Shown here: piece after piece, positions 1,349-21,729 of the stretch
How the letters are laid out: every line of letters begins with the position of its first letter
Position numbering within the stretch: the stretch's first letter is position 1
DNA from: Oculina patagonica
Taxonomy: Eukaryota
Reading direction: 5' to 3'
NCBI RefSeq assembly: GCF_052425735.1
Contig: NC_135759.1
Coordinates: forward strand, 930,001-994,000
Length of the DNA: 64,000 nt
Made by a program: the position numbers and the translations under genes
The notes under the pieces: model-generated
Seen by the model: only the letters and a program-made list of their open reading frames with translations
Database searches by the model: none
What the model was told of the DNA's origin: nothing

Positions 1349-3939
1349 AATACTGCCAAAGCTTTCTCTGGAGATGTTAGGGCCAGGACCATTGCTAGAA
1401 AAGTGAGTCACTTTGTTAAGTCCTGCAATTTGAGTTATTTCTGCAGGCATCTTGTAAAAAATGTGGAACTTTTCTTTTGAAGACTCACCTACAAGTGGCA
1501 AGACAAATCTTACAAATTATTAAGTATGGAGCTTTTACTTTTGGGCAACACCATACATATCATCCTCAGAGACCCAGGCCGGCAAAAAATCGGTGAAGAT
1601 CGCTCTTGACTTTTCTTCGCCGATTTTTTCGCCCATATACTAGGCTTTTCCCTGCCCCCACTAACTGCCCCTGGGTCTCTGAGGATGTGTACATATTGTC
1701 ATGAAAGATCTGTTGATTAACAGACTCTAACCACAACTTGGGGTGATGCAAAAAGATTTCAATACACCATACAATTTTTATCAGACCCTAGCCACACTAC
1801 ACCATATAATTTTTATAATTTGATGGCATCGAAAATGGTGGATCTCACAGATTTCAAGATGTGGCTGCATGGCTATATAGCTAGGGTCCTTTAATGCCCT
1901 ACAATTAAATCACACATTTTTAAGTGCCTTAGTGGGAGCAACTGAATTATTTCTTTCACATTAAATTTTGTTTTAGTTTATTGAAGGAAAAACTCACAAC
2001 CATTTGGATCTACCTTATGCTGAAAGAAGCTTTACCTATCTGCCATTTGAACACAGTGAGGACAAGAGAGATCAGGTGAGTGGTGTTACTGTGCAACTGA
2101 TGGACACCCCACAGGGAACCCACCATGGTTTTGGTGGAATGCAGGACTGCTGCTGGGAAATACTGTTGCCCAAAGAGATTCTTCACAACTATCATGTTTT
2201 CCAAAACTTGTGTAGAATTTTTATACATGCACTGGTGTACCTGATGGGAAGTTTTTCCTTATTATAGGAAATTAACCCTTGTGTTAATTAAGGTATCTGA
2301 AATTAACGGGACTTAAATTAACGCGAATCGAAAGAAAAATTACTTCCCAATAAACACGAAAGAGGAGGTAACATTTCAATATGAAGGAAACGTACACAAC
2401 AAAAAACATTTGTTGAGACAACAGGAACAAGTTTATCTCAACACTTGGCGTATACCCTTTACCCAAGCGTAGGGGGAATCTGACCGCTTTGATCATTCTT
2501 CGCAGTTTCGGTGATACTGGTAGATTTTCACCATGATGAAATAATGCCTTTTCCTAGAACGGTCTGTTCTATATCAAGAAACTGGAGTCAAAATAATGGA
2601 AATTAAGGTCACGGAAATGTATGCTTCACTTAATTAACAGCGTGGGGATTAACGTTAACAAAAATTAACGCGAATTTAAAAAATTCGCGTTAATTTCATG
2701 GAATGTTAATTTCCTATAATAAGTTGTACAAATTCTACACAGTTTGGAATGGCCAAATGTTAGTCTGGGATGATATGACTCATAGTTGATTTCTTATTTT
2801 CTGGCCCTTATAAATTTCAATGAAAATGCACTTCCCGAGATTAAAGCCATGACTTATTATTCCTTTAGGAATTGTCAGTGAGTTTAACATCCAGTTTGGT
2901 AGAAGACTTCAAGGGCACAGATCATGAAGAAATGGCCAAGATGAACCTGGAGTTTGCCATAAGACACAAGGTAAACAAATCAGTTGTTCATAAATTAAAT
3001 TTCAATTGATTTAGTGGTAATGAATGGGATAAAAAAATAACTTGTGCATTTCTGGTCATGGGTGGGGTAAAAAAAAGTGGTATACCGTAAATTCTGGTTA
3101 TAAGCTCCCCCCCCCCCTGCTTATAAGCCCCTCTGGTTATAAGCCCATCTACCTGGAAACAAAAGAATACATCCCATTATAAGCACCCCCCCCCCCCCGG
3201 ATATAAGCCCCCCTCTCCCAGATGACAGTACTAAACTAAACAGGGCTAAATGTTGCTTTATTATTCCTTTTTAACTTAAAAACGTATTTCGATCAACACT
3301 CCCGAGGTTCGTTTCGAAACGTTTTTTTCATTCCACTTATAAGCCCTCCCGGATATATGCCCCTCCGCTTATAAGCCCACCCAAAAACTGTTATGGAGTT
3401 GTATAAGCCCAGGGCTTATAACCGGAATTCTATGGTATTTTTAAGTAGTTCAGATATGGCATTATTTTTATTTATATACCTGATGAAATGTCTTGTCTTG
3501 TCTAGCTGTTTTTCATGTAGGTCTTGGGCAAAATGGAGTAACCTCCCTTCCACCTTGACTTCCAAAGCACTGATGCTCTGCAAATGACCGAAACCACTTA
3601 CAGTCCTGTGCATGATGAATTTGACAATAAATTGCCAAATTTCTACGTTTTGGTGTGCTCTCCTACAGTGTATGGGCCAATAAATTATTTTGTCTCGTGG
3701 GTGTAAAACCCGGTCACAGTAGACCCAGTCCATAGGGTGGGGCCTGACTGCTGGCATTTTCAGTAATTGTGCCTGGTTCTTAGACTTTCTCAAAGACGCT
3801 TTATCAAAAATGTTCTTCTTGACAGGAAGTCATAGACAAGTTTGGAAGATATCCACAGCGGAACAAACCTTTAGGAAGAGAAAACACGGCAGAGGAGGAA
3901 GAATTTCTTAATAACATTCCTGATCGATACAAGTGGTAA
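1349..3939 (+). CDS. DUF924-family protein, 3' part (last 4 exons; 5' exons lie upstream of the window)
   Basis: Phase-0 GT-AG exons 1349-1402, 1977-2075, 2869-2970 and 3826-3939 join to NTAKAFSGDVRARTIARK-FIEGKTHNHLDLPYAERSFTYLPFEHSEDKRDQ-ELSVSLTSSLVEDFKGTDHEEMAKMNLEFAIRHK-EVIDKFGRYPQRNKPLGRENTAEEEEFLNNIPDRYKW*. The motifs ER.F.YLPFEHSE..DQ and H..VI..FGR(F/Y)P.RN..LGR..T.EE..FL are characteristic of DUF924. AATAAA follows at about 4128 and 4167. Confidence 0.85.
2258..2723. mobile_element. MITE (non-autonomous DNA transposon) in DUF924 intron
   Basis: Terminal inverted repeat (TIR) CTTATTATAGGAAATTAAC ... GTTAATTTCCTATAATAAG, with internal TTAACGCGAA repeats. Confidence 0.6.
3085..3435. 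mobile_element. Tc1/mariner-pogo-like MITE (same family as 38503-38838)
   Basis: TA|CCGTAAATTCTGGTTATAAGC ... GCTTATAACCGGAATTCTATGG|TA, with repeated internal TATAAGCCC. Confidence 0.75.
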
Positions 3940-4319
3940 ACACAGACAGACGGTGAACATTACATGTAAGGCAAATTTATGTACAGGACACCACGGTGAA
4001 CAGTAGCCATATATTATACAGGACACCTTGCTGCTGGATACCCTGTTTTGCAAAGAGACCCTGCTTTTATGAACACTGAAGTCCTGGTGGCTTTCATGTA
4101 ACAGGACGGTGATCATGCAGTTTATTTAATAAATTGTATTTTATGTACTGTATATAAAAACATTGAATAAATTGCTGCAAAATTGTATTCACTTTAGTAA
4201 TAAAAGATTGGTCCAAAAGAATAGACATGGTTATATAGTGGACAATAGTTATCATTGGAATTTTTTTGCCAAAGGAACAGAAGCCTTACTTTGTTCCCAA
4301 AAACGTTATTACAGTATTA

Positions 4320-4815
4320 CAGTGGAACCCCGATATAAAGATATGCTAAGGGAGCAGTAAAATATATCGTTATATCGAAGTATCGTTATATCGAAACTCC
4401 CGATATAACGATATGGCCGTGTAATAGCCGAAAATATCGTTTTATCGGGGTAAAACTAACATGTACTTTTTCACTGGATACAGAGGTTTAGAATAAAGTA
4501 TCATTTTTGTATACCATCGTACAAAGCTGTTATCAGAAACGTTAGAGATTACTCGATTACTGTTATGCTACTGGATTAAGTTCGATGTTTTGCTAAATTG
4601 TTGACTGTGTACTGATAATATCGTTATATCGGGGAAGATTTTCCGTTCGGTACGCTAAATTCTCATCGTTATATCGGGAATATCGTTATATCGAAGATCG
4701 TTTTATCGCGGTTTTGTCCCATACATTTTACTGTAACTTTTGCCGGGACATAGAATATTCATCGTTGTATCGGGAATATCGTTATAGCGAGGATCGTTAT
4801 ATCGGGGTTCCACTG
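4320..4815. mobile_element. Tigger/pogo-like MITE
   Basis: TA|CAGTGGAACCCCGATATAA ... TTATATCGGGGTTCCACTG|TA, with many internal ATCGTTATATCG repeats. Confidence 0.8.
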
Positions 4816-5980
4816 TAGTACTGAACAGAATATAAATAAAAAATTATACATCAGAATTTTCTAAATTCTCTTGAGTGTTGCCGTGTAATGTGAAAATATT
4901 TTTTCACCCATGAATACCATTCCCACAGCCAAAGGAGGTCTGTATTCTCATAAGAGGTTGTAATTTTTGCAGATATTTTCAGCTGTGTTTTGAGGTGAGC
5001 AGCAGTACTAACAATGGGCTGCATGGCGGGTGGTGGGGAGAAATGTAGGGAGAGTGTAGCCTGCTCTCAGAACTAAAATCCCACAAGTAAACAAAAGTGA
5101 ACTGCTAGTATGTAATCAGCTTATACACAAGGATTGCATGCCAAACTCAAAACTTGATAAATGTACCGCAATTGGTTATTGTATGATAAAGACACACACA
5201 GATACAGGCAGACACTCAGACAAAATTATATAAGTTGAAAGAAAAAATACTTGGGTCATTAAAATCTTGGTAAAGTTGGAAAAGGACAATTTTGAAAAGG
5301 TTTCCAAAACTAAGACGGAGGGTCCGACAGACAGACAGACATAATGATTCTGTTCCTGCTTCATTTATTTGGATGGTTTCAAGCTCCTACACGATTTATA
5401 AACAGTCCTTCAATCTGTTGTTTAATTTATAATTTACCTCTCTTAACATACTAGAGTCTGACAATAGAAAATATCAGTAAAGTTAAAGTTTATCATTATT
5501 AATTTTTTTGTTCAAAACAATGTTTCAGCAACTGTTTCCAGGAGGATTTGCTGGAAACTGTCTCTTCAACACCAACTTGAAATAAATAAATATCCTCACT
5601 CTCTCATCAATCAGTCAAGGAACAATTTTTGTAGTCAAATCCTTGCAGAGAAGATAACTAAGCAATTTCATCCAATTAGTGAATAGTTTGAGCATTCACA
5701 AAATGTCCTACTAGAAGATTTTTTTCTGGCTTGTTGTCATGAGATGTTATGCGACACTTAGCAACTCCTTACATAGAATTATGTTCAAGCACTGTTCGGT
5801 GACTGAAATGCTAGATAATAGATAATAGCTAGGTTTACTCTAATTTGATCTTTTATAAAATGTAGCTTGGCTTTTTGCTCTTGAAAAAATAAAATTGATA
5901 GTTACTACTTGTTATGTGACGAAATCTACAACCATGCTATGTAATACAGAACAGATGATCAACGTCCAAGATGAGTATGT

Positions 5981-8900
5981 CTATTTAGCCAGAAGTGACT
6001 GCCCGTCCATCTCCTCTGGAATGGGAAGTCCCATGACATCTAACACAGTATTTGCTACATCACAAAGTGCCGCGTTGTGAGTTATTTCCTTAAACTTGAG
6101 TCCACCAGTCATGATGAAAGGAACTAACAAAAAACAGAACAAATCAAAGTGATGCACTGTGTATCACATGAAAGCAACTACAAGTTTAAGTTTAAGTTTA
6201 ATAATACTTTGTCATGCTAATACAAGGTAAATTAATTACAGAAAAAAAAATAAAAAAGTGCACGACTGGAAAAAAATTGGGAGAAACTAAATTCCACTAC
6301 AAAGAATATTCTCCAATATTAAATATACTAAAAATTAAGAAGTATGATTTAAACACCTTATTCACGCCAAATAGTGTGAGGAGAACATCGTCAACTATTT
6401 TTGATTCTTAACATTCTGTTTCTGCTATACAGGTGCAACTACGCACATTTTGCTGTGTTTTTTTTTTGTGGGAGGGGGAGGGGAGGTCAACAAGCAATAA
6501 CATATTCACTGACACACAAAAATGTACCTCCTATTAACACCCCTCAACAACAATTAAAACACAATCACTGTACTATACCTCTGTTAGTAGTGTGTGCTGT
6601 ATGAGGACCACCTTCTTCACTGATCATCTGTTCAGCATTGCCATGGTCAGATGTTACCATCAGTACATAACCCATCTCTTCACAGGCTTTGAAGACTTCA
6701 CCAATTGCTTTATCTAAGAAACAAACAGGAAATGAGCTGGTTAATCGATTTCCTCAAACTCTGAAAAAGAATAATTCTCTGTGGCTTCCAGGTGTCCCCA
6801 CCCCACAAGAGTGTCTCCCACACCACTGCATTCTGCCTTCATGAAAACCTCCTAAAAATCTCATCATTTCCTATTAAATTTTGAGCAAAAATTTCTGCTC
6901 AAACATTATAAAATGTCCTAAAGTTTCCAGTAGTGAATGGAACCATATTTTCCAGTTGACTGCACTGTACTGGAAAATGTTTCTGAAATTTTAAAAAAAA
7001 ACAAAAACAGACAACCTCTTGCTCAAGATTTACGCAGTTTTTTGAAAATTTATTTTTGGAAATTTGTGCTCCATTTGAGATTGCTCCTGGAATTTCTGGT
7101 TAAAGGGTTTGAATCTCAGAAATTCAACATTTTTTTGGGTTTTCTGGAAACTTCCCAGGACATTTTTGAACCATTTGCTCTTGTTCCAAAATTTCCAGAA
7201 CTTTATGTAACTGTAAGTAACTGCTGACTTACCTGTTGCTTCACAGCCCTTGATTGCTGGCTCGTATTTTCCAGTGTGACCGACCATGTCAGGTGGAGCA
7301 AAGTTACACATTACAAATGGGTACTGACCACTCCTTATGGCTTTACAAACCTGTAACAATACATTCAAAAAAAAATTATTGCAATGTGTAAAAGCCTGTT
7401 TCAGCTGGAGAGCAGCATGTAAAAAGGTGTGGTAGCCTACAGCGTGGTAAGTCTAGAAGTGTGACCTGTGCTAATGGTAGTTCAGTTGGTCAGGCAATCG
7501 GCCGGTTGGTCGGTCAGTCTTTATATTACAAAGGTGACATTCGACAGTCATTAAGAGATAAGACAAGATAAGATAGATATAAAGTTACTTCATTTATACT
7601 CAAAACAGATGAACCCATGGCCCTTAAAATACACAAATAGCCAAAGTAAGAAAATATAAAAAAATAATAATAAAAGCGCACACAGAGAGGTCACAACATT
7701 ATTAAAATTTTAGGTCAAGTTGGCTCACTATCCCCCCACAAGAAAAACTTGCATAAAATTGCATAATTATATTGGTCATTGTAAAGAACAGCTTGACAGT
7801 TTCATCAGTTACCCATATATTTAGGAAATTACCTCTTCACCGACACTGCCCGCGCTCATCTCAGGTTTCAGGTCATATGTTGCTACTTTAGGTGACGGCA
7901 CCATGAATCTAGTTTCCCCTTCAAACTGCTTCTCCACTCCACCATTGAAAAAGAATGTTACATGTGCATACTTCTCAGTTTCTGTCACAAAAATAATATA
8001 GTGGGATGAGGGATCTTACTATATAGAGGGGGGATCTGAGGGACCCCCCTTCAATTACAGTACTAACTAGTGGATGTATAGGAAAGCAGTATAACATTAA
8101 AAAAGTCAGTGGCAGATCTAGAGGTGCTCAAGAAGGGATAGGCCCTTGTGAAAAAGGTGTTGGGGGGGGGGGAGGCTTTTCTTGCTCCAAAACAGCAAGG
8201 GGAGGGGTGTAGGGGAACCTCCCGTAGATCTGCCAATGGAAGTTATTATTTTTTCAAAGCAACACCTACCAGCACAGTGGAACTGAGGGACACTGTGAAC
8301 AGATAGCCATTCTGCTAGGACATTCTTTGGAGTAACAGGAGGGAACAGAAGAGGGAAGGGAAATTCCTTCTTGTACTGCGTCATGGTTATATGGTGCTGA
8401 AAAACAGAACAAACCCATACCTTAATATAAGCCAAAGTAATATTACAGCTGTGAAAGGAAGACACAAAAGAACAATGGATTTTTTAGTTCACCAATCAAT
8501 GACACTCGAAGAAAGGTACACATACTAAGGGACGAACCATTATTTTTTTGGAGGGGGGGGGGGGGATGAAAAATATTGAAAAAATTGTTTGCAGGGCCTG
8601 GAAAGACAAAATAAATTGTTTGCAAAAACGATATGTATAACAAAAAATAGTAAGAATTTCAGAAAAAAATGTTTGCAGAGGTGTATAAACTAAAAAAATG
8701 AGTTTGCAGAGGAAAATTTTTCATCACCCCCCTCCAAGAAAATAATGGTCCGTCCCTAAGAGGGGTCTGAAGGGGTAAAATGGGAACTGGGATTTGGGCA
8801 AATTTTTATTAGGAAAATGGGATAAACTTGGGTTAATGGGACTTCGATTGGGTCACTGGGAATGGGAATCAAAGACAGAAAAACAATAAAACTGGGACGG

Positions 8901-11900
8901 GTAATTTGAAAATTTGGGAAAATAATAGGCTGGGAAATGGGATTTGGGCAAAATTTGGGCTGGAAAATCACAGGTTTGTGTCTTAAACTGGGTCAGGGTT
9001 TAGGAGGCCGGGATACACCCCTCTACCCATTGGTTGGACTTAACATAATTATTCCCACCTTCCGTTTGATACTTACAAGATCTTTGGGAATAACATCTGT
9101 TGGAAAGGGGGGCTTTATTCCAAAAGCTTCATTGATTTGTCTCATTCTATCAGCACGGAAGTCAATAAAGCAGAGAACATCTCCATCTGTGGAAATTAAT
9201 AATATTTAAAATCACAAACATGCAATACATGTAGTTGATGATGTCCTTTATTCACAACACTTTTATTCTTGATGACATTTATTAAAAATATATTAAGAGA
9301 TTAATAATAATAATAGATTTGGGTCACTGTTAGCACAAACCTTTGATTCTTCCTTCAGGATCAACAATGATAGGTTTAAGAAATTCATCTGTCTCATGCT
9401 TGTCTCCCTTGGCTTCATATCGACCCTTGATAACCTGTTGATTGACAAATGACAAAAAGAATTAATTCTGTTAAGAAAGCCCAGGGATTTTGTTAAAAAT
9501 ACTATTTAATTTGTGGGTTTTTTATTCTTGGATTGGGGTTGTGGGTAGAGGGTGGGGGGGGGGGGGGGCTTGGAAGGAATTCTAGGCTTCAAAATATTTA
9601 GGTTTATATTTTATAAAATTTTGGAAAGGATGTTGCATCTAAAAAATTTAGGTGTTAACATGTACATGTACAAGAATTACTGCAAAGTGAAGAAAACATA
9701 AAATACCGGTACACTACTGGCTTTTTAAATAAGGAGCTTATAAATCCAAATCTTAATCTTAATCTGAATAGGGGGAGGGGGGAGGTTAATAAGAATTTCA
9801 CAGCAAATGAGAAATTTACAAATACCAATTTATTATACATGTCAAGGTGCCAACATGTATGTACACTGTACTACACTGTTAAATCAAACACTGATGTTAA
9901 AACATACATGTACCTCAATAACTTTGTCTTGTGTTGTTACTTCACCCTTTCCCTGAACCAATGCTTCAAATGCAATCTTGATTCTCTCCCAGCGCTTGTC
10001 ACGGTCCATGGCATAATAACGGCCAACAACAGTTGCAAGTGAGCCATAATTGACCTCTTTAAGCTTTTTCAAGACCTGGTCCACATATGTAACTGCAACA
10101 TACCATTGTCATTAGTTTAAGGACTCTATTTCAGCTTCAAAAACAAATTACCATTATTTTGAATTGCTAGCGGTTTATTAACTGCAATTACACAATTACA
10201 CTAGCTATAGACACTGTAGAAACCCCTTTTTTTCTTTGGTTAATGGGGGTATGTAAACACTTTTCTTTGGGTTTGTACATCGTCGTCGTCGCACGCGCCC
10301 GCGAACCATACCGCTAGCCATGATGACCAAGAAAAACCAAAAACATGGGTCTGTTAATTTTCAATGGGTATGGGGCTCTGCTCTGCGGCCCTTCGGGCTG
10401 CTGGGAGCTCCGCTATGATAATAAATTTGAGACTCAAGTAAAATATAATTTTCAGTCTAACATGTTTTTCTCATAAGGGCGAATGCTACCTTTCAGTAGT
10501 TTACAGTAAACAAGAACACATGATTAATGTTATTCACCTCCACTGGTTGGTGATGTATCTCGCCCATCAGAGAAAAACTGAATGTAACACTTTGGAACAC
10601 CAAGTTCTTTAGCTGCGTCAATTAATGATTCTAAATGTGTAATATGCGAGTGGACACCGCCATCACTCACCTGTGAATATTAAACAAAAATGTTACAGTT
10701 AAACCTTAGTAAAGAATCTTCTCTCATTGCAATGATATCTAAACTAAAATCAAGATTTTGCAGCAGGAAACATACACCATGTACATGTGATAAAGTATTG
10801 ATTATTATTATTATCATTAACCACCGTACTGTTGCACTGATGCAACCCTTTAGAAAAAATTGTAAATGTGACGTGGCCTCACTGTACCTAGGCCAGATGG
10901 GTTGATGAGCTATGAGCCATCCAGCCCTGGAGATGTCAACAATTCATTTTTGATGTGCAATAGCCCTTATGCGTGTTAACGTCAGACTAGCTAGTTTCAC
11001 CACCAAGCCTCGCTTTCGAAGTGCAAACTTGTAAATTTTATCATGAACCTACAGTATATTCCCAAAGCAGCAAAGTTGAAAAGAATACCCACGTAAAAAC
11101 TGCATGAAGGTGGCACAGGGTTGAGAATAATTCGCGTAAACGAGGCTTGGTGGTGAATTTTGAGCATATGACGCTATCATGCATAAGGCCTATTCAGAAC
11201 TTCACAATGTTCACCAGGACATTTTTAGAACTTTTTAACAAATTCAAGCTTCATAAATGTGTCATGATAGAAATACTTATTGACTGAGCTGGAGCTCTTA
11301 ATGGGACAATATTTGGCTTGAGGTCATGTTGAACAGACCTTGCTGCTCTCAGTCTGTACACAATAATCTCAAGTCAAATATTTCTCTGTTCCACCTTTCT
11401 TCTTGGTCAATAAGATCATAGCATTCCCAACAGGTTGCACAAGTATACTGGACTCTGAATCAATAGGTCTGGATTTAAGCCACATGCAACATTGCCCTTG
11501 GATAGTTTTCTTGGGCAAGAATCTACTTTACTCTCACAGTGCTTCTCTCAAGACCTAGTTGCTTCATGCCACAGCACCTGGATTGTACTGTATTGACTTA
11601 CCGTATTTACTCGAATAAGCGCCGGGACGCTTATTAAATTTTTCGCGCCTCAAGTGCGGCGCTTATTCGAGGGCGGCGCTTATTTCAGGGCGGAGCTTAT
11701 TTAAAATTTGGACACCACAGCGAATCTCATCTTTTTACAGTAATTGAAAATAGCCTCTTTTGATTGTCGGTATTCGTCTTTTGCTGAATAGAGATGTGGC
11801 GCTAGCTGTCTTGGAAAAGTTCGCGGCCATTACAACATTTACAGCACTTATACGTATTGTAAGAATGTTGGATATAAAACTAATGAACGAGCGGTAAAAC

Positions 11901-14451
11901 AGTCACTTTGAACTGCAAAACATCGCTTTTGATAGAAATTAAGAATGTCCAAGTTTGTTTTAGAGTTGCTTTGTAGTGCTGTTTTAAGTTAAAAGGAATA
12001 CCTCGAATAAGCGCCACATCGGGACTGTGGCGCTTATTCGGGGGCGGCGCTTATTAAGTTTTTTGTTCCAAATGCGGCGCTTATTCGAGGGCGGCGCTTA
12101 TTCGAGTAAATACGGTAAGCACTGAAACTGGCGAACATCCAGCTTCTTTGATTACTATAAAAATGGAATGGACTCAAATCTGATAACAGCATGTCACACT
12201 GACTCACCAAACCAAGGAAATGAAGCCTTCCATTGGTAGCTTTTGCCTTTTCTGCTGCTTCAGCAAGAGTTTTGTTTTTTGCAAACTCCTTCTTTTCTGA
12301 GGTCATGTTAATTCTTACAATATCCTGTGCAAAAAGACAAGCAAGACTAATTTAGAATGACCCATTACTAATCTCATACATGTACGTGGCCTCAGTTGTG
12401 GTCATGCTGACTGTGACCATATAATTTTAAAATGTAATTATATACATCTACAAGCAGTCCAGGTCCAAAGATTGTGCCGTTTTCTTGAGAAAGTCACTTT
12501 TAATTGTACTCACGCAGCGCCTCTCTACAGACTGTACATCCAGGATTTTAAATGGGTACTCGTCTGGTATATTTTAAGGGCTAACTGATAATAAAAGTGC
12601 TGAGAGTAACCTGCATGCGATGGACTACAATCTTGGACAAAACTGTTGAAACACTTAGGAAATTTCCACTTATTTAGCTAACAGAGTTGCAACCCTCTCC
12701 CTCCATTTCAATGTTGTTAATGCTGACGGTATTTTCAAAACAAAGCCTGTCGAACCGCAAACCTCAAGAAACAACATTGAGTAGGGGGAGAGGGGGATAA
12801 AGTCTTTTTACCCGCTTGAAGGTCTGGACATTTGTGAAAAATGCATGAAATGTGTTTGTTTCAACTAGTTTTGTCCAAGATTGTAGCATCCAATCCAGGG
12901 GGAGTAGCAATACATCAGTTGCTTCATGCTATGCAAACTGGGATAAGTTTCGGTGCTGTGAGCCACTTTGGTTCGGTGCAGGCTATACGATTTGATATAA
13001 TACATGTAGGTAATCTATGTTGTTTTCACCTGGTAAACAACTCTTCCAGCTCCAATATTCAAATGTCCTACTTCACTATTACCCATAAGTCCTGCAGGTA
13101 AACCAACTGACAAACCAGACGCATCAAGGGTGGTGTAAGCGTTCTTTTCTCCAGCACAGAAGGCATCCATAACTGGAACTGTGGCATTGGCAATGGCATT
13201 ACCTGTAGCAGCAGGGGATTGATAAATGAAGGTATTCTGCCATGTCTCAGAGACACTTAAATTTAATAACTCAACACGTCATTACAAAGTTTTGCCCCTA
13301 CTCAATCCTTCAGAATCCTAACATCTGAAAACTACAAAAAGTACTGATACACCTGTTTGACTCATATCAACCATGTGGGAATCTAGTTCCAACATTCTTG
13401 GTTCAACTCCAATGTTCCGTTGCATATGTACGACATAAGTAACGATAATTCCTTCTTTCACAGGTCAGGAAAGGTGTTTTGACTTCCAGCCAATTATTAC
13501 AATCTATTTTTTTTTTCAATTTGAATTTCGATTCATCGCATTTAAAAGAAAATGCACACAAATTTACAGGTATTTGGCAATTTCCTTTTTGGATACAACA
13601 TGAACAGTCACCCTTATCAATAATGTCGTCACCATAAACAGGTGAAAGGTGCTGATGTACATAACCTCAAGCAGTGACTAAGGGATGGACCATTATTTTT
13701 TTTGAGGGGGGGGGGGGGATTTTTCTCGGCAAGATATTTTTTTCACCTTCAGGTTGTGCAATATTTTTTGTAAAATATTTATCTTATCTTGCGCGATTTT
13801 TTTTGTGCAGGATTTTTTTTGTGCAGGATTTTTTTTGGAAATTGCCTACCCCCCCCCCCCCCCCCCCTCAAAAAAAAATTAATAATGGTCCGTCCCAGTC
13901 CTTATTATTCAAACTTCTTTCGATGTTCGTGACCTCGTAACAAGAGGTGTCACGCAACGCTACGACTGTGATATTACTCAAGCTACTACTTTGCAAACAA
14001 AAATGAACCAGAAGACGTAACTATTTTAACTATCGCTACAAATGTTAAAAAAGTTGAAAAGATAAATTAGCAGGTTTTCTGACATTTTGGTGCAAGGTGG
14101 CAATATCACAGATCATTTAAGAACGTGACATTTTCGATCGACTGCGGACATCAATGAGATTTACCGCAATAACATGCTTAAAAGTAATGAAGGACGATAA
14201 TAATTTCTTGAAAAGCATGTTCTGCGATTAAACAACATTTGATCAACAACAAAATTTAGTTTAAGAGGAACATTAACCCTAAGCTTATTTTAAACAGATG
14301 CAGAATAGGAAATAATTTATTAGTAATGACAGTGCGATCCACAAACAATCATTGTTTTGCTGTGAAATATAATCAAATTACCTTCTTTGTTTTCAGAGAT
14401 GCCCCAGCCATCAATGACAATCAAACAGACCTTTTTCTGTACCTGAGCCAT
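5981..14451 (-). CDS. gpmI: 2,3-bisphosphoglycerate-independent phosphoglycerate mutase (iPGM), 12 exons, 515 aa
   Basis: Exons (minus strand): 14382-14451, 13030-13202, 12208-12324, 10538-10670, 9914-10092, 9341-9434, 9077-9186, 8270-8396, 7833-7981, 7233-7350, 6579-6713, 5981-6123. Total 1548 nt, all GT-AG, phases consistent. Motifs: [23 protein letters not shown] (catalytic Ser), [69 protein letters not shown]. Confidence 0.97.
8529..8756. mobile_element. PIF/Harbinger-like MITE (related copy at about 13682-13896)
   Basis: TAA|GGGACGAACCATTATT ... AATAATGGTCCGTCCC|TAA. Confidence 0.7.
11601..12115. mobile_element. pogo-like MITE in iPGM intron 3
   Basis: TA|CCGTATTTACTCGAATAAGCGCC ... 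GGCGCTTATTCGAGTAAATACGG|TA, with internal GCGGCGCTTATT repeats. Confidence 0.8.
12628..12883. mobile_element. TA-targeting MITE nested in an older SINE-like repeat
   Basis: TA|CAATCTTGGACAAAAC ... GTTTTGTCCAAGATTG|TA. Removing it restores GATGGACTAGCATCC...GCTTCATGC..AAAC.GGGATAAG, a repeat also seen near 56880 and 61620-61690. Confidence 0.7.
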
Positions 14452-14794
14452 GGCAAATTAAAAGTTAATTCACAAAATCCTTCTCTTACACAATCTTTTC
14501 CGAAGTTCAAGGGCCGGCCGGTATCTCCGCAGTGCATGATGGTTAATGACACGCGCGCACACTGGGAACGAGGTTGCGCGTCGGTTGCGCACAGACCTCT
14601 GGGGAGTTCGCATTTTCCGCCAATTTTCCGACATCAGTTTTAAAAAATACACCTGATTTTTAAAACATTAGCATTCTGCAAACTAAAGACAGCTGGCAAG
14701 CTATTTTACCAATTAATCAAATGCCGGGACCGTAGTTTATCCTTTCTCGGCCTGAAATCCTCAAAATTAATTCCGTCAGGAAGAGGCCTCATAT

Positions 14795-15252
14795 CTCAGG
14801 GGGGGGGGGGGGGGGGGGGGGTACTCCGGCCAACCTCGTTCCCAGGGCTTTTCCCTTGGTGTTTGAAATTTTCGATTCCGGGATTTTTTTAGGTTGGAAA
14901 ATTTGGCAAGTATTTTTTGGGTGACTTGATTTAAATAGGGGATTTTTGGGGGGTATTAAAAAACGAACTTGGCGCGGCCTTGGCGTAATTATGGTATGAT
15001 GAATAAACAAACGCGAGCGTTCAATCATGTTCAATTTTTTATGGTTTTCTTTGTGTTATTGCTCCTCCTGGCAATTTAGGTGTAATTTGACAAGGGTTTT
15101 TTTTTTGGGGGGGGGGGGGGTCATTTTTGGTCCAGGGATTGTTTTGGGTAATGTCGGAAGACTAAGGGATTTTTTTGGGTCCTGAGTTTTGCCTCCATTC
15201 GATCATCCCCGTCATTTAGAAGCCGGCCTACCCCCCCCCCCCCCCTCTGGGC
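14795..15252. mobile_element. Poly-G/poly-C-ended DNA element with 8-9 bp TSD
   Basis: CCTCATAT flanks both sides (14787-14794, 15253-15260). Ends are CTCAG(G)nTAC ... TA(C)nTCTGGG. It is inserted in a GATCG-rich repeat that extends to about 15527. Confidence 0.55.
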
Positions 15253-15823
15253 CCTCATATGATCGTCCATAAGCGATATCGGAGTTTTGAAAAAACACAT
15301 GTGCGTCGATCGGAATAAAATCGAATATTCATATGCGGGAACAAAGAAAAGATCATGAATTATTATCTTGATTGATTAACCCTATTTTGCATATACCAGA
15401 CGATCGGGGCGATCATATAAGAACCCCGGATCGCTTCCAATCGCTTCGATCGCCTACGATCGCCTCAGAATTTGCAAACGACAGAAGAGACAGAGACGAT
15501 CGGGGCGATCATATGAGAACCAGCCTTTAGCTTACGTCCTCGTTCTTCGAGTCACGTTTGATCTGTTAATCAGCATATTTTTTTTTAAAAAAACTTATCT
15601 AATCTGGCAATGTAGAGACCTTAATAGCCAGCAACTTTGCCATTTAGTGACCGAATTAAATATGAGAGAAATACGTTGAAAACTTAACAAATATTGTTAT
15701 ATAAAAACGTCAAATTTAATAACGTTTGTGTGGTTGTGTTAGGGTTGCCACCCAAACATACAAACTATCTTGAACGGGCTTTGAATCACGTGGTCTGCCA
15801 AAGCCTGTCAGAATGTGATAAAT

Positions 15824-17983
15824 CACAGGGAGCCCAGACAAACTGTTTGTGTATGGACTGTGCACATTTACATTTTTATAGAGAATGTATGGAATTTACC
15901 GAATGGTTTGTAAAATTGCGTAAAATGGTGCAAAACATTAACAAATTTGTGCTGAATAAATGTTAAGTTTCCTACCTTTTGTGTAGTGTCGTTCTTTTGG
16001 CTCGAAATGGCGAATTTGAGTCGATTGAAGGGTATTTTGCTTTCGCTGTTTACTATACATCTAATTATATGGAAAGGGTGGAAACTCCAACAGCTCCAAA
16101 GTAGAACACTTCCAGCGCCGAGCCGATTTTCGACCTGATAATCCCATCGCACAGCTTTCAAACTACGCACCAGAAAAGAGGAAGGCTTGACGAATCTTCA
16201 CGTATCATTTGATCGAAAATTTATCCAAACGGTCCGGAACAAGCCCTCAAACGAAAACGGGTATCCAAAAATTTTAAGCCGTCCGAATGCGTAGCACCAA
16301 TTTGTGGTGCCGAAGGGAAACGCTATTCCCCAACCTCTTTGTGATTGGATACAATTGAACAATGGTCGTTCAAGATTTTGTCTCGTGGATAGGGAGGCAA
16401 AGGCAAAACCAATACTCAATAGTATAGGGAGTGATATCAATAGTGCGACGCAACCTTAGGACCCTCGCTCAAAATATGGCAATTACGATGGCGATGCCGG
16501 AAGCGATGCAGTATCATTTAAATATGCGTCATTGTAACTTGTATGCGTCGAAGTAAAAGGAGTGCGCCATTGACGTCTGTTTATTTACTTCCAAATACAC
16601 TCTTCCCGAAACACAGCTCCCACAAACAATGAAAACCTTTTTCCCTTGCTTTAGCAGTCAACTGTTGATAGCCCTCACCACAAAAGATTTCCCTGTTCCT
16701 CCCTCTCCAGTTACAAGAATATTGTGCCCAGCTTCGGCTATGTGTAGGATTTCAGATTGTTCAGAAGTTAAGGTTTCGAACCTAGAAAATGAGGACTATT
16801 TCGGTGATTGCAGCCATAAATGTTTAAAACATCAAAAACAAAAAGAAAAATAAAGGAACTCAAACACGAGTACCTTGCCATATTCGTATGTCGCGAAAAA
16901 ATCCCACTTTTCCGCAAACTCGCGATCGCCTACATTTTCTGCGCTACGAAAGTCGTGATGGAACTTCGCGGGGTTTTCCCCATACAGCTGGACCTTAACA
17001 AAAGAATAGCAAATCACAACAACGGTTTTGCACGAGAGTTTCACATGTGGGTGTATTGTTTTGCAATCTCTGTAAAACAACTAGGTGAGATGACTAAAGC
17101 CTGATATTTTTTAGGGCTGTAAAATATTTTTTTTCGTTGAAAAATGAACGCTGACTTCTATTTGAAGCTAGCTAGCTTTAAAAATGAACTCATACCGACT
17201 AGATGTAGGTACTTACTCGTTTCTTAAGTCAGTATGAATATTTCATAATTACTTCGCCACACTGACAAGTTACAACGACGCATATTTAAATGTTAATGCG
17301 TCGCTTTCGGCATCGCCGTCATAATTGCCATATTTTGAGCGAGGGTCCTAAGGTTGCGTCGCACAATTGACGTCACTCCCTATACTATTGAGTATTGGTT
17401 TTGCCTTTACCTCCCTATCCACGAAACAAAATCTTGAACGACCATTGTTCAATTGTATCCAATCACAAAGAGGTTGGGGAATAGCGTTTCCCTTCGGCAC
17501 CACAAATTGGTGCTACGCATTCGGACGGCTTAAAATTTTTGGATACCCGTTTTCGTTTGAGGGCTTGTTCCGGACCGTTTGGATAAATTTTCGATCAAAT
17601 GATACGTGAAGATTTGTCAAGCCTTCCTCTTTTCTGGTGCGTAGTTTGAAAGCTGTGCGATGGGATTATCAGGTCGAAAATCGGCTCGGCGCTGGAAGTG
17701 TTCTACTTTGGAGCTGTTGGAGTTTCCACCCTTTCCATATAATTAGATGTATAGTAAACAGCGAAAGCAAAATACCCTTCAATCGACTCAAATTCGCCAT
17801 TTCGAGCCAAAAGAACGACACTACACAAAAGGTAGGAAACTTAACATTTATTCAGCACAAATTTGTTAATGTTTTGCACCATTTTACGCAATTTTACAAA
17901 CCATTCGGTAAATTCCATACATTCTCTATAAAAATGTAAATGTGCACAGTCCATACACAAACAGTTTGTCTGGGCTCCCTGTG
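15824..17983. mobile_element. Foldback DNA transposon with ~720-bp inverted arms and 7-bp TSD (P/Galileo-like, non-autonomous)
   Basis: Arms about 15824-16545 and 17262-17983 are reverse complements (an identical 100-aa ORF appears on opposite strands in the ORF track). Termini CACAGGGAGCCCAGAC ... GTCTGGGCTCCCTGTG. GATAAAT is duplicated at 15817-15823 and 17984-17990. Confidence 0.88.
16589..16881 (-). pseudogene. 5' fragment of an intron-containing PIF1-family (SF1B) helicase gene inside the foldback spacer
   Basis: Exon 16874-16881 (ATG GCA AG), GT-AG intron 16782-16873 and exon 16589-16781 give MARFETLTSEQSEILHIAEAGHNILVTGEGGTGKSFVVRAINS*LLKQGKKVFIVCGSCVSGRVYLE. It has a Q-motif LT.EQ, GHNILVTG, Walker A GEGGTGKS (16685-16708) and a motif Ia-like segment. 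In-frame TGA at 16658-16660. Confidence 0.8.
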
Positions 17984-18724
17984 GATAAATCTGATGATTT
18001 GAGCCGTCATTTGCAACGATATAGCATGCAGGGAATCCACAAAATTTGAAAATGTATAAGATAAGTTAAGGTACTTTATTTACGTGAAATATGCTAAGCT
18101 ATACGGCTAGTTTACAGATATTCCACAAATATATCCAGGTTTGTATCTGCTACAGCTACAATAGAAGGTGACAGACGATGCCAATTTTCTAAACCACTGC
18201 AGGGGTTAGAAAATTATATATGTTGGGTAACTAATAAATTATAAAACAGGCACGGCGAGAAGGAACATGAACAAAGAAAGAGGTCAAAACTTTCACATAG
18301 CAATGGTAAAATCGCGAAATTAAGTACACTTTCATTCACTTTTCAGTTTCTGACACCACGCCAATTTATACTTGCGAAATACAGCTCCGGAATTTTCGTC
18401 AAGTTTTTAGTGCACTCGAACGTAAAAAGAATAAGGAATATATTGACTGGAAAGTTGTTTACTTAAAAGAGTGTCAGCATACTTAATGTTTACTCAGTGT
18501 TTAGAAAAAATAGGTGTGAATTATTTAATAGGACTTTTCAAGGGGAGCTTTGAGTTAATTGAGAAAAAGCTAATCATAGGATTGCCATAAAAGAACTCTC
18601 AAGGGGGTTATAATCATTGCTTAAATTATTATCAATTATTCATCTTAATTCGAGATCAAAATTTACCCACGTAATTCAGTTGACTTCAGTCTGTACATAA
18701 TCCTTAACAAAGTTCAGTTAGAGG

Positions 18725-21700
18725 ATGTACATGTATGCACTTGTAGCGTTTTCCCTTGCAAACTATGTGCAAGGCTCAAATCGTATCACGGAGCCTCACT
18801 TCAAAGCAATCAATTTTGCAGAGGCTGTAGGTGGCCGAAAACTCGATGGGAACGTCATAAAAAACTTGGAAGTGACATCCGAAAAATCTTGTCAATTTGA
18901 ATGCGTCAAAGAAACTCGTTGTTTGTCGTACAACTTTCATTCCATCCAAGGGAAATGCCAGCTAAGTGACTCGGATCGTTTTGTTGGTCACGTGAACTTT
19001 ACACAGGAAGACGGAGCGTTATACAGAGGAACACAGGTAAAATATTAAGATTTACAGGTTTAAGAAGATGGGGAAGTAAGATTTACATAACGCTTTGGAC
19101 CTTGAGGAAAAAGGGGAACAAGATTGCACATTATTACAAAGTATTTGGTATAACTCGATATAACTCGAGGACTATTTACATATCTAGATGTAACTTAACT
19201 GAGCTACTAAAAAAGACTATTCCTATTATTGTCCTGCAAAGAGTAAAAATAATAGTGTCTTGTGCAAATCATGTTGGGTTTTAAAATGGAAAACATGAAG
19301 TTATGTTTTATTTTTCTGTTTAGAGCATCTGCGAAAGAGACAATCCGTGCAAAGAGAATGAAGTATGCACTGCGGACTACGAAGCAGGCACTCACTTCTG
19401 CAAGTGCTTTAAAGGTAGGTTTGCGCGGACATTTTCACGAGTAGGTTTCTACACTTGAAGCTTCAGTGTACGGAAATCTAATGAGTAAAGACGCGTACTG
19501 AACAAATGAAGATGTTTTGAAAGAATGTTTGAAGATTTTATACCGAAACCTAGCAATTCAGTTTATTTGATTAAATATTGTAGGTAAGTTTTTGGAGAAA
19601 GTTGTATTACAAATTCAACCAATTTTTAACATGCATAATTAATACAGTCATTGTTTTGGTATTTATTTAGAATGCCCCAGAAACAATTATAAACATTATA
19701 AAGGCAATGTCTTGGTATTCTTTTTTTTCCGTGTTAGAATGCTCTAGAAACTGTCGTGATCATTACCAAAACGGTTCCACATTTGACGGTGTATATTGGG
19801 TTTATCCTGACAAACAAGAACCCATTCAAGTGCTGTGTGACATGACAACTGACGGTGGTGGTTGGACAACTTTTCAAAGGCGTATGGATGGATCCGTGGA
19901 CTTCTTTCTCGACTGGGCATCGTACAAACAAGGTTTTGGAAATCTTAATGGAGAGTTCTGGCTCGGAAATGATAATCTTTACCGCCTGACCGCGTCTGCT
20001 AACATGATGCTTCGAGTTGATATGGAGGATTACGATGGTGACCGAAGATATGCCGAGTACACGACCTTCTCCGTTGCCGACGAGAGTGATAATTATCGGG
20101 TGACGATCGACGGATACCAAGGCACGGCGGGAGACTCGCTGATATCTTTAAATAAGCCCATCAGGTATGTTACGAGCATATCACTGTTTAGTCAGCAGTG
20201 TATAATCCAGTTATTAAATGGAAAAGATAAGCTTATTGAAAGAATGATAAAAGGTCGATTTGGGTTTGATCGTGATGTGGGATGAATGATGGGCCGCTAT
20301 TGGGCCGATGTTGGATCGACTTGGGGTCAATGTAAATATTCTGTTTATAAATTTCATGGAGCGTTGATTTCTTCCGGTAGTGGAAATATGATTTGTAGAA
20401 TAATGCATGGGTGTGAAGAGAAATGAAATTTCTTGAGTGTTCAACTCGATATCTCACGAGTGAGCGCAGCGGACAAGTGAGACATAGCGTTGAACACTCG
20501 AAGAGAAATTTCATATCTCCAAGCAAACATGTATTATTTTGCTTAATTTATAGAATTACTGATTATGAAGCTTTTGGTGACTTTCCCAAGATTTCCGAAG
20601 ATTCTATGAATAATGTCTGAAGGTAATACAAACGTTTCCGGACATTTTGAGTAAAACTTCCGAAGATTACAGAAGATCACCTAAATTTCCGAAGTTTTGT
20701 CGAAGACTTTCGAGGAAGTTCCAAAGATATTTAATCTATAGACCGACAAATTTAAGTAAAGGGTAAAACATGGCATCAAACATAATTAAAGTAATCGATA
20801 TCACCACAGTAAAATTACAGTAGAATCTCGATTTCTCGAACCCTCAGTTTCTCGAAACTCCCGATTTCTCTGAACAATTTTCGTTCCCCTTGGATAGTAC
20901 ATCTTTGTTATTTTACCCCCGATTTCCCAAGGCAATTTTCGTTTCCACTTGATATTCGAGAAATCGGGATTCGACTGTCTATTTTTTTACCTGTGTTCAA
21001 ATTAGGGTTTTTCTTAGGGCTGGAAATCTTTGCATTACACAGCAGTAAATATACCATGGATGTACAATATCCACGACGTTTCGAACTCATCTTGAGTTCA
21101 TTATCAAGTAGATAAGAATAAAATAACCGTTATTTTATTTTTATCTACTTGATAATGAACTCAAGATGAGTTCGAAACGTCGTGGCTTATTTTCGCTTAT
21201 TTTTATACTTAATTGTATATCGAAATGTTCTCTCATTAGAATGTACAATATCAAAGATCTTAGTCATTTACATCACACATTTCTGGTTATCCAAGGAGGA
21301 ACAAGATTGTCTCCCCCTGGTTGGGTTGCCTTGGGACTCCCCTCCCCCTCCCCGAGAGTCTGTAGGCGCGGGCGGGCGTACGCCACCAAATTTTTTGGCT
21401 TCATGGGTTTACCAAAAATCCTTACCCGTGGTGCTCCGCTGGCGCGCATCGCGCGCAGGAGCTCCACGGATAAGAAATGTTTACCGTTTCCCCTTTTATG
21501 TTGTTTCAGTAATATGCAGTTCACAACCAAGGACAGAGACAACGACGTTAATAGTAATGCCAACTGTGCAGTGAATAATTATGGAGGCTGGTGGTATAAT
21601 GGATGCCATAACGCCAATCCCAATGGTTTGTATCAAGGAGGAGGACATGCACAAGGAATCACATGGTCGTCATTCAGAGGCCAGGAATACTCCTTAAAAC

Positions 21701-21729
21701 ATATTGAGATCAAAGTTCGACCACAGTGA
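18725..21729 (+). CDS. Secreted PAN/apple-EGF-fibrinogen C-terminal domain protein (FReD/ficolin-like), copy A, 349 aa
   Basis: Exons 18725-19036 (signal peptide + PAN: CQFECVKETRCLSYNF..GKCQLSD), 19324-19414 (EGF-like), 19738-20164 (CDMTTDGGGWTTFQRRMDGSVDF, GFGNLNGEFWLGND) and 21510-21729 (FTTKDRDND, GGWWYNGCH.ANPNG). Total 1050 nt, phases consistent. Confidence 0.93.
21068..21114 (-). ncRNA. Minimal type I hammerhead ribozyme motif (U3-A8 variant)
   Basis: Minus strand reads UAUCUAC UUGAUAA U GAACUC aagau GAGUUC GAAAC GUC GUGGAUA: 7-bp stem I, 6-bp stem II, palindromic ACGU stem III and GUC cleavage triplet. Confidence 0.65.
21142..21188 (+). ncRNA. Minimal type I hammerhead ribozyme motif (inverted partner of 21068-21114)
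   Basis: TATCTAC TTGATAA T GAACTC AAGAT GAGTTC GAAAC GTC GTGGCTT. Stem I is reduced to 4 bp. Sense orientation in intron 3 of FReD gene A. Confidence 0.55.

Follow-up and report, generated by a model that had tools for sequence, protein, structure and literature searches.

Oculina patagonica carries a foldback transposon at positions 15817-17990 of the stretch analysed here, which is 64,000 nucleotides long (RefSeq assembly GCF_052425735.1, contig NC_135759.1, positions 930,001 to 994,000; hereafter the window). The element consists of two long inverted arms around a spacer that holds the start of a PIF1-family helicase gene. It is most probably a non-autonomous, internally deleted member of a cut-and-paste family with long terminal inverted repeats (TIRs), whose parents encode both a PIF1 helicase and a P/THAP9-type transposase. 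The element has an exact target-site duplication (TSD), it belongs to a family with copies in other assemblies, and its helicase gene is native to that family. In relatives, the helicase is accompanied by a second gene, which encodes a P-type transposase.

The window element and its helicase stub

A repeat scan resolves the element into two inverted arms of 719 nt each, which are 98% complementary and separated by a 722-nt spacer. The element is 2,160 bp long, the TSDs lying outside it. Its parts are as follows (L-numbers here and below are our handles for loci):

15817-15823, unstranded: left TSD, GATAAAT, the same 7-mer as at 17984-17990
15824-16542, plus strand: left 719-bp TIR, beginning CACAGGGAGCCC; the arm distal from the helicase gene
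16553-16781, minus strand: truncated PIF1-family helicase exon 2, with motifs I (Walker A, GTGKS) and Ia and an in-frame TGA at 16660-16658
16782-16873, minus strand: 92-nt GT-AG intron, phase 2, by direct reading of the sequence
16874-16881, minus strand: micro-exon 1, ATG GCA AG, i.e., Met-Ala and the first two bases of an Arg codon
16882-17264, minus strand: unique 5′ region from the proximal arm to the helicase start, collinear with L002 9259-9750 (68%) and L007 9942-10042; presumed helicase promoter and 5′ untranslated region
17265-17983, minus strand: right 719-bp TIR, ending GGGCTCCCTGTG on the plus strand; the 5′ arm relative to the helicase
17984-17990, unstranded: right TSD, GATAAAT

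The last bases of the element are the reverse complement of its start motif. Gapped BLAST lengthens the inverted repeat to 16556/17249 (735 columns, 97.6%). A 719-nt inverted repeat at 98% cannot originate by chance, and the odds of 7/7 flanking bases agreeing by chance are approximately 1 in 16,000. Intact ends and a TSD together mean that the window copy was inserted by staggered-cut transposition. The repeat scan and BLAST thus bear out, in every detail, an earlier sequence-only reading of this DNA, which had proposed a foldback at these positions with ~720-bp arms around a spacer, a 7-bp TSD and the terminal motif. That reading had also raised the worry of an assembly artefact, which can be set aside, because the two arms differ at 13 of 719 positions (script count) and the same architecture occurs in independent long-read assemblies. 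Repeat searches found no tandem or direct repeats and no transposase-binding sub-repeats inside the arms, which are unique sequence.

On the minus strand, the helicase gene starts with ATG (16881-16879), GCA and AG|GT; the intron runs from 16873 to 16782 and the second exon continues from 16781. This exon reads FETLTSEQ..GHNILVTGEGGTGKSF.., with ..FETLTSEQSEILHIAEAGHNILVTGEGGTGKSFVVRAINS before the TGA and LLKQGKKVFIVCGS..AHSFYF after it. The window keeps 8 + 229 nt of helicase coding sequence, which breaks off after motif Ia. Since the stub also has a stop codon, the window copy makes no functional protein, and as it encodes nothing functional, it must have been mobilised in trans.

The identity of the stub was assessed on both sides of the TGA. 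The 40-aa piece before it has PIF1 as its best Pfam family (E 2e-5), as the sequence-only reading had expected of this peptide, with a score just under the cutoff (24.7 vs 25.9 bits). The piece after it aligns with motif Ia of relatives (alignment A1). In a search of representative proteins, the 40-aa piece matched mostly short fragments, and the search became informative once the matches were re-ranked against the window; an Atlas search with the same piece gave nothing informative beyond PIF1/AAA. The closest proteins to the stub are P0122, which has a Pfam PIF1 domain (63% identity over 83 aa, E 7e-29, tblastn), and P0179 (57%). This tblastn similarity spans 16795-16553, stopping exactly at the inner edge of the left arm.

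Comparison with other copies supports the gene model. An ATG-GNN-AG micro-exon with a GTAA donor is kept in L018, L019, L008, L021, L022, L023, L026 and L029, and these eight further copies share an intron of ~90-110 nt with a pyrimidine-rich tract and a YAG acceptor. In the copies that were translated, the split codon is Arg (AG|G in the window, AG|A in L018 and L008). The ATG-GCA-AG start, 92-nt intron and PIF1-like exon therefore read as first claimed from the sequence.

Helicase and transposase genes in related copies

We drew family data from five European Nucleotide Archive (ENA) assemblies and from Joint Genome Institute (JGI) coral metagenomes. The handle for the copy search was a 100-aa chance open reading frame (ORF) in the arm, which was looked for among gene calls on other assemblies' contigs before the surrounding DNA was fetched. 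ENA assembly ERZ25067872 has ~80%-identical copies with the same termini at unrelated sites. Three of the copies have clear TSDs, namely CTGACGG in L001 (7 bp), AAAGCAC in L002 (unambiguously 7 bp) and GTTTGTAT in L004 (8 bp), so the tabulation that had been suggested gives, with the window, 7, 7, 7 and 8 bp. The left arm is 68-81% identical to the 5′ subterminal regions of L001-L005, L008, L018, L019/L020, L023 and L026. The exact 27-nt terminus pattern had no match in the JGI metagenomes, and the helicase profile had none among viral contigs.

The copies differ in what they retain. L001-type copies, whose arms measure 610 and 642 bp, are almost perfect palindromes, L003 is a solo arm, and L005 is a rearranged copy without a TSD. 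L002 retains the upstream region, exon 1 and 36 nt of the intron while its helicase exon is gone, so its internal breakpoint is not that of the window copy. L029 and L060 have the order arm, helicase fragment, inverted arm, with helicase breakpoints that differ from the window's.

The helicase gene is native to the transposon family. The helicase ORFs closest to the window's, those of P0122 and P0179 in L018 (ERZ25067556) and L019 (ERZ25071797; L020 is the orthologous locus), lie 0.96-1.6 kb downstream of a CACAGGGGGCCC terminus, and the DNA between terminus and ORF is homologous to the window arms; L008 has the same order at lower identity. A profile scan of the JGI metagenomes gave 80 helicase loci, many from coral samples. 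In 27 independent loci, the sequence extends more than 1.7 kb upstream of the helicase, and 12 of them have CACAGG[GC][GA]GCCC 0.8-1.6 kb upstream, with different flanks each time; we estimate the expected chance rate of this motif per such stretch at ~0.01-0.02. Independent insertions thus have the same micro-exon and intron start behind the same terminus, which argues that the helicase is native and not captured. Longer copies encode full-length helicase ORFs, and in our tree the helicases form a transposon-specific clade.

A second gene lies downstream of the helicase in many relatives. In L010, the helicase (a 176-aa ORF and a 640-aa ORF) is followed by a string of short ORFs on the opposite strand. 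By tblastn, the gene to which these belong recurs in convergent orientation downstream of the helicase in L031, L039, L050, L051, L053, L058/59, L062, L070 and L088; of the 13 loci that extend more than 6 kb past the helicase start, 6 have it. In L088, a single contig holds the terminus (2713), the helicase (3670-6066) and the transposase exons (7545-12216).

The last exon of the convergent gene points to a P-type transposase. It matches PF21789 (TNP-like_RNaseH_C) in L039, L051, L062 and L088 with 26-31 bits (cutoff 24) and has a conserved motif, NQD.VENHFCQ.R..NGQNNNPT. A profile of this exon (A3) has as its top PDB match 6P5A, the P element transposase (E 0.022, residues 515-551, including NQDIVEHFF). 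By residue numbering, E531 falls within the aligned stretch, and we take E531 to be the catalytic glutamate of P element transposase. The exon's Atlas neighbours, at a score of 0.97, are clusters with TNP-like_RNaseH_C, TNP-like_GBD and THAP9_C. Other exons of the gene have invariant GGF.IDEMKIQ and MDGAD.NRQFIK motifs; PDB searches with exons e136 and e76 (phmmer) and with profiles A4 and A5 gave nothing useful.

Some transposase copies have changed at the key position. In L010 (5029-5436, minus strand) and L088 (7545-7949, minus strand), the conserved NQD.VEN glutamate is replaced by V and K, respectively, so these copies are probably inactive, judging by this residue. Downstream of a deep-branching helicase (37% identical to P0122), L063 has a weak match to the last-exon profile (4260-4472, minus strand, E 2e-5), which hints that the two-gene layout is older than the main clade.

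Long TIRs are present in relatives as well. L062 is a full-length two-gene copy; the sequence ahead of its helicase (positions 1-274) is an inverted match to 9812-10212, which lies past the transposase start. Its 3′ arm runs on to the contig end (at least 0.68 kb within the contig) and matches, inverted, the 5′ arms of L044, L064, L053 and L036-L041; comparison with L044 implies that the TIRs of L062 are ~0.8 kb long. L064, a deletion derivative, has an inverted repeat of 555 bp. The window, L062 and L064 therefore all have TIRs of several hundred bp, as in Galileo-like P elements.

We placed the window copy with a maximum-likelihood tree built from the N-terminal part of the helicase. In this tree, the window fragment groups with L018, L019/L020, the L008/L021/L022/L029/L060 group, L023-L027 and L090 in a clade of 15 rows (support 95/82); it fills only 76 columns and has a long branch. 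The terminus is present in each member of this clade whose upstream sequence can be seen, and sister clades combine the terminus with the transposase. Placement of the element near P and Galileo, which the sequence-only reading had favoured from the CA-starting termini, 7-bp TSD and long foldback arms, is now backed by the P/THAP9-type transposase of the sister clades, the long TIRs of L062 and the TSDs of 7-8 bp. That reading had also proposed looking for a THAP/Tnp_P transposase in long copies, and here the outcome is mixed: relatives have a TNP-like RNase H exon and no THAP domain was found.

Several loci added no independent copy, element end or TSD, and some contigs have features of their own. 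L007 is a transposon mosaic with an internally deleted helicase. At 10112-10398, its helicase 5′ exon is fused to a segment like the helicase 3′ end (L019 11764-11885), an internal deletion within the gene amid Harbinger-like and other transposon fragments. L008 and L009 are not independent copies, being haplotigs of one locus. They are 99% identical, L008 having a 5.5-kb insertion (14186-19708) with a piggyBac-type DDE_Tnp_1_7 ORF and L009 holding ~0.97 kb extra, and both differences are insertion polymorphisms within one sample. Mutator-like transposase ORFs (PF20700) and a C48 (Ulp1-type) peptidase ORF lie by the helicase stub there (L009 15591-16091 and 19195-20118; L008 11924-12238), so this transposon-rich region seems to contain a Mutator-like element (MULE) with a C48 protease. 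L010-L017 probably represent a single locus that recurs across samples and were not used to define element ends. L012-L016 (Tara and Logan samples) diverge from L010/L011 at the point matching L010:3927, into a AATCGAACTC-like satellite, and this looks like a polymorphic junction or an insertion just downstream of the helicase gene. L064 could not serve as a TSD source, as its outer 3′ terminus is lost. Finally, at L019 1-1358, ~7 kb from the element, lies the terminal part of an ORF of 1,446 aa, whose DNA_pol_B_2 domain is typical of a Polinton/Maverick-type or similar protein-primed polymerase.

Origin, mobilisation and genomic setting

A "parent" in this context is a complete, ~10-kb copy of the element, and complete relatives have two genes that read inward from the two TIRs. 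The PIF1-family helicase is next to the 5′ TIR, and an intron-rich P/THAP9-type DDE transposase, convergent with it, is next to the 3′ TIR. The window copy keeps the two ~0.72-kb TIRs, the presumed helicase promoter region and the helicase coding start. The transposase of an autonomous relative would recognise the CACAGG..CCTGTG termini, and DDE transposition would create the 7-bp duplication; we infer that the window subfamily uses the family's P-type transposase. Internally deleted P elements classically result from interrupted gap repair, and the deletion in the window copy may likewise have come from interrupted repair of an excision gap in a long parent. More speculatively, an element-borne PIF1 might aid a ~10-kb parent in long-tract repair synthesis after excision or in handling its long inverted ends.

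Several results weigh against this two-gene explanation. Only the C-terminal RNase H motif reaches significance among the transposase parts: single unspliced exons searched against Pfam and PDB gave no RNaseH_N or GTP-binding-domain match, and exon-wise searches gave no THAP domain, though an upstream exon may have been missed. The 433-aa N-terminal ORF of L051 (7708-9006) and its counterparts in L062 and L010 have no Pfam match at E ≤ 0.1-1, and in Atlas the N-terminal ORF gives weak leads only (0.6-0.76) to THAP/Tnp_P_element clusters. None of the loci recovered is a complete two-gene copy bounded by both termini and a TSD. Neither tblastn nor a profile hidden Markov model found a transposase exon in the 15 members of the window's clade, whose contigs are mostly short or derivatives. 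L019/L020, the sole clade member with long downstream sequence, looks helicase-only, and its candidate 3′ end matches at 20/28 positions with no matching TSD. As the transposase is seen only in sister clades, both the P assignment and the two-gene model would extend to the window subfamily by kinship.

Two alternatives deserve serious attention. The first, which we consider possible though unlikely, is that the second arm is no natural 3′ TIR and is instead the 5′ end copied in inverted orientation through template switching or hairpin repair, so that the element would be a palindrome with two 5′ ends. This would account for the lack of unique sequence from the 3′ side, the helicase homology running as far as 16553 and the inverted repeat beginning at 16556/16542. 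It would also suit the L001-type copies, which are almost pure palindromes, and the candidate 3′ end of L019/L020, which is short and imperfect and has no long TIR. However, natural long TIRs flank both genes in L062, and the inverted arms of the window copy, L029 and L060 reach a similar depth (~700-735 bp) despite different helicase breakpoints, as a fixed TIR boundary predicts. This alternative bears on the origin of the copy alone, leaving its mobilisation unchanged.

The second alternative, a little less probable again, is that the window subfamily is a helicase-only lineage, with PIF1 and no transposase, which owes its mobility to two-gene relatives. The count of transposase exons in the clade (0/15) is what such a lineage would give, and the 3.9 kb between the L019/L020 terminus and its candidate 3′ end holds the helicase gene alone. 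The clade's exon-2 ORF is also intact in many near-identical variants (cluster P0228, 122 members). However, most clade contigs end within or just past the helicase gene, and the L019 candidate 3′ end is without a TSD, homology between subfamilies stopping at the helicase stop. Every well-sampled sister clade has the transposase.

The remaining alternatives can be given little credence. Mobilisation of a Mutator/Foldback-superfamily element by a MULE transposase is improbable, despite the foldback shape and despite a PF20700 ORF (E 3e-15) 1.8 kb downstream of the L008 helicase stub, with a second one and a C48 peptidase in L009. The two PF20700 pieces come from different elements within a haplotig pair rich in transposons and occur in no other helicase locus; they and the C48 gene are not part of our family. 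The Drosophila Foldback (FB) element has a 9-bp TSD and tandem-repeat arms; our family shares with FB and MuDR-related foldbacks the long inverted arms and short middle, but its TSDs are 7-8 bp and its arms are unique sequence.

Pack-type capture, in which an unrelated TIR element took the 5′ end of a host PIF1 gene, is more improbable still and can be rejected. It was the second of two options in the sequence-only reading, and a mere fragment with its intron, as the window holds, is what capture of genomic DNA would leave. However, more than 12 independent insertions, whose helicase identities range from 79% to ~31%, have the gene start in the same position with respect to the terminus, and the full-length, transposon-specific helicases of longer copies are not what capture would give. 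The other option, a deletion derivative of a larger TIR element with PIF1 beside its transposase, is supported by the conserved order of terminus, arm, micro-exon, intron and PIF1, by the transposase and long TIRs of relatives and by the 7-8-bp TSDs. A decayed Helitron or Helentron fragment lying between inverted repeats by accident is the least credible explanation: PIF1 helicases of eukaryotic transposons are classically Helitron Rep-Hel proteins (PMC8788227), but this gene begins with a conserved ATG micro-exon of its own, which lies 0.9-1.6 kb from a TIR terminus, Pfam scans of the helicase ORFs show no Helitron_like_N, TSDs and TIRs are present, and the E value of the family profile is 1e-47 with human PIF1 vs only 4e-7 with the Helitron transposase Helraiser.

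The rest of the window has no second copy of the element, no further part of the helicase and no transposase exon. CACAGGGAACCC at 2110 has no arm homology, and we take it as a chance occurrence. Approximately 300 bp left of the element is a 28-nt direct repeat (15398-15425 and 15494-15521, 96% identical, 96-nt spacing) with a 20-nt inverted match nearby, and the pair may be a remnant of another small repeat. Fibrinogen_C exons lie on the plus strand at 19707-20282 (E 4e-52), 21166-21726 (E 1e-20) and 32400-32975 (E 3e-51), the first of them ~1.7 kb downstream of the foldback. Three such exons imply that the window contains at least two tandem fibrinogen-related genes.

Comparison with known elements and significance

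Galileo, from Drosophila, is the P-superfamily element most like the coral family. As described in two papers (PMC4168063; PMC3688188), it has TIRs of hundreds of bp and a P-type transposase in complete copies, and most copies are two-TIR non-autonomous derivatives with short spacers. Its TSD is typically 7 bp and in a few copies 8 bp (PMC4168063), a pattern that the coral family repeats. Long TIRs, TSD lengths, two-TIR derivatives and a P-type transposase (here in sister clades) are therefore common to both. However, the coral family adds a second gene, the PIF1-family helicase beside the 5′ TIR. Its hosts appear to be cnidarian, to judge from the coral metagenome sources and one sea-anemone protein. 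Internal tandem repeats are absent from the window arms, GTANTAC does not describe the four TSDs, and the transposase is intron-rich, with no THAP domain detected in its N-terminal ORF.

With P element and THAP9, the coral family shares the RNase H C-terminal motif (NQD.VEN.F..R..G.....P) and TSDs of 7-8 bp. P elements have 31-bp TIRs and one gene, and internal-deletion derivatives are their commonest copies. The coral transposase ORF ends ~40 aa after the glutamate motif, so it appears to be without the ~200-aa C-terminal domain of P transposase, which is not evident in it.

The helicase, on the other hand, has a conserved tail of ~380-440 aa, found only in PIF1-plus-tail proteins, one of which is from the sea anemone Actinostola (NCBI). 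It is predicted to be all-helical (predicted local distance difference test, pLDDT, 71; predicted template modelling score, pTM, 0.46) and has no Pfam match and no Foldseek match in PDB. In VIA-align, residues 617-714 of 6P5A rank sixth with Z 5.3, which is in the noise range for helical folds, so any likeness of the modelled tail to the P transposase C-terminal domain is an open lead, not support. A doubtful idea is that the parent is a "split" P-type transposon, in which the element's PIF1 is a required transposition factor that docks on the transpososome via its tail. If so, the helicase could drive the long-tract repair synthesis that re-copies the ~10-kb element into the gap, or could open the 0.7-0.8-kb inverted ends, and derivatives such as the window copy would be products of failed repair. 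It would then be the first DDE cut-and-paste transposon to depend on a superfamily 1B helicase.

Helicases are known from other mobile elements. KolobokH and AcademH are likewise cut-and-paste TIR elements with a helicase besides the transposase, but their helicase is RecQ (superfamily 2), whereas here it is PIF1 (superfamily 1B). They also have other transposase superfamilies and different TSDs. The RecQ helicase of KolobokH is an accessory one, and in Kolobok-1_CCri it is on the complementary strand (PMC9587614). Helitrons and Helentrons share with the coral family a PIF1-family helicase in a eukaryotic mobile element. In Helitrons, however, Rep is fused to the helicase, transposition is by rolling circle and there are no TIRs or TSDs; here the helicase is a separate gene, and it is far closer to cellular PIF1 than to Helraiser.

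A survey of PIF1 helicases names Helitrons as the sole rolling-circle transposons with such a domain and does not mention TIR elements (PMC8788227). Full-text searches of the published literature found no PIF1-bearing P-like or other TIR element. A family that pairs a P-element-type transposase with its own PIF1 helicase, as in these corals, is therefore apparently undescribed.

The window copy itself is a dead derivative that amounts to a 2.2-kb palindrome lying upstream of a fibrinogen-domain exon and has no further function of its own. The family matters more. PIF1 in eukaryotic transposons is taken as a Helitron signature (PMC8788227), so annotation pipelines tend to label such fragments Helitron-derived. 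Here, a Galileo-like P-type cut-and-paste family that is widespread in coral-associated assemblies has PIF1 as an ancestral and conserved part, which represents a second, independent recruitment of PIF1 by mobile DNA. The definitions of termini, TSDs and TIRs can now be used to catalogue the family, which offers a concrete way to test whether transposons can bring along a repair helicase of their own.

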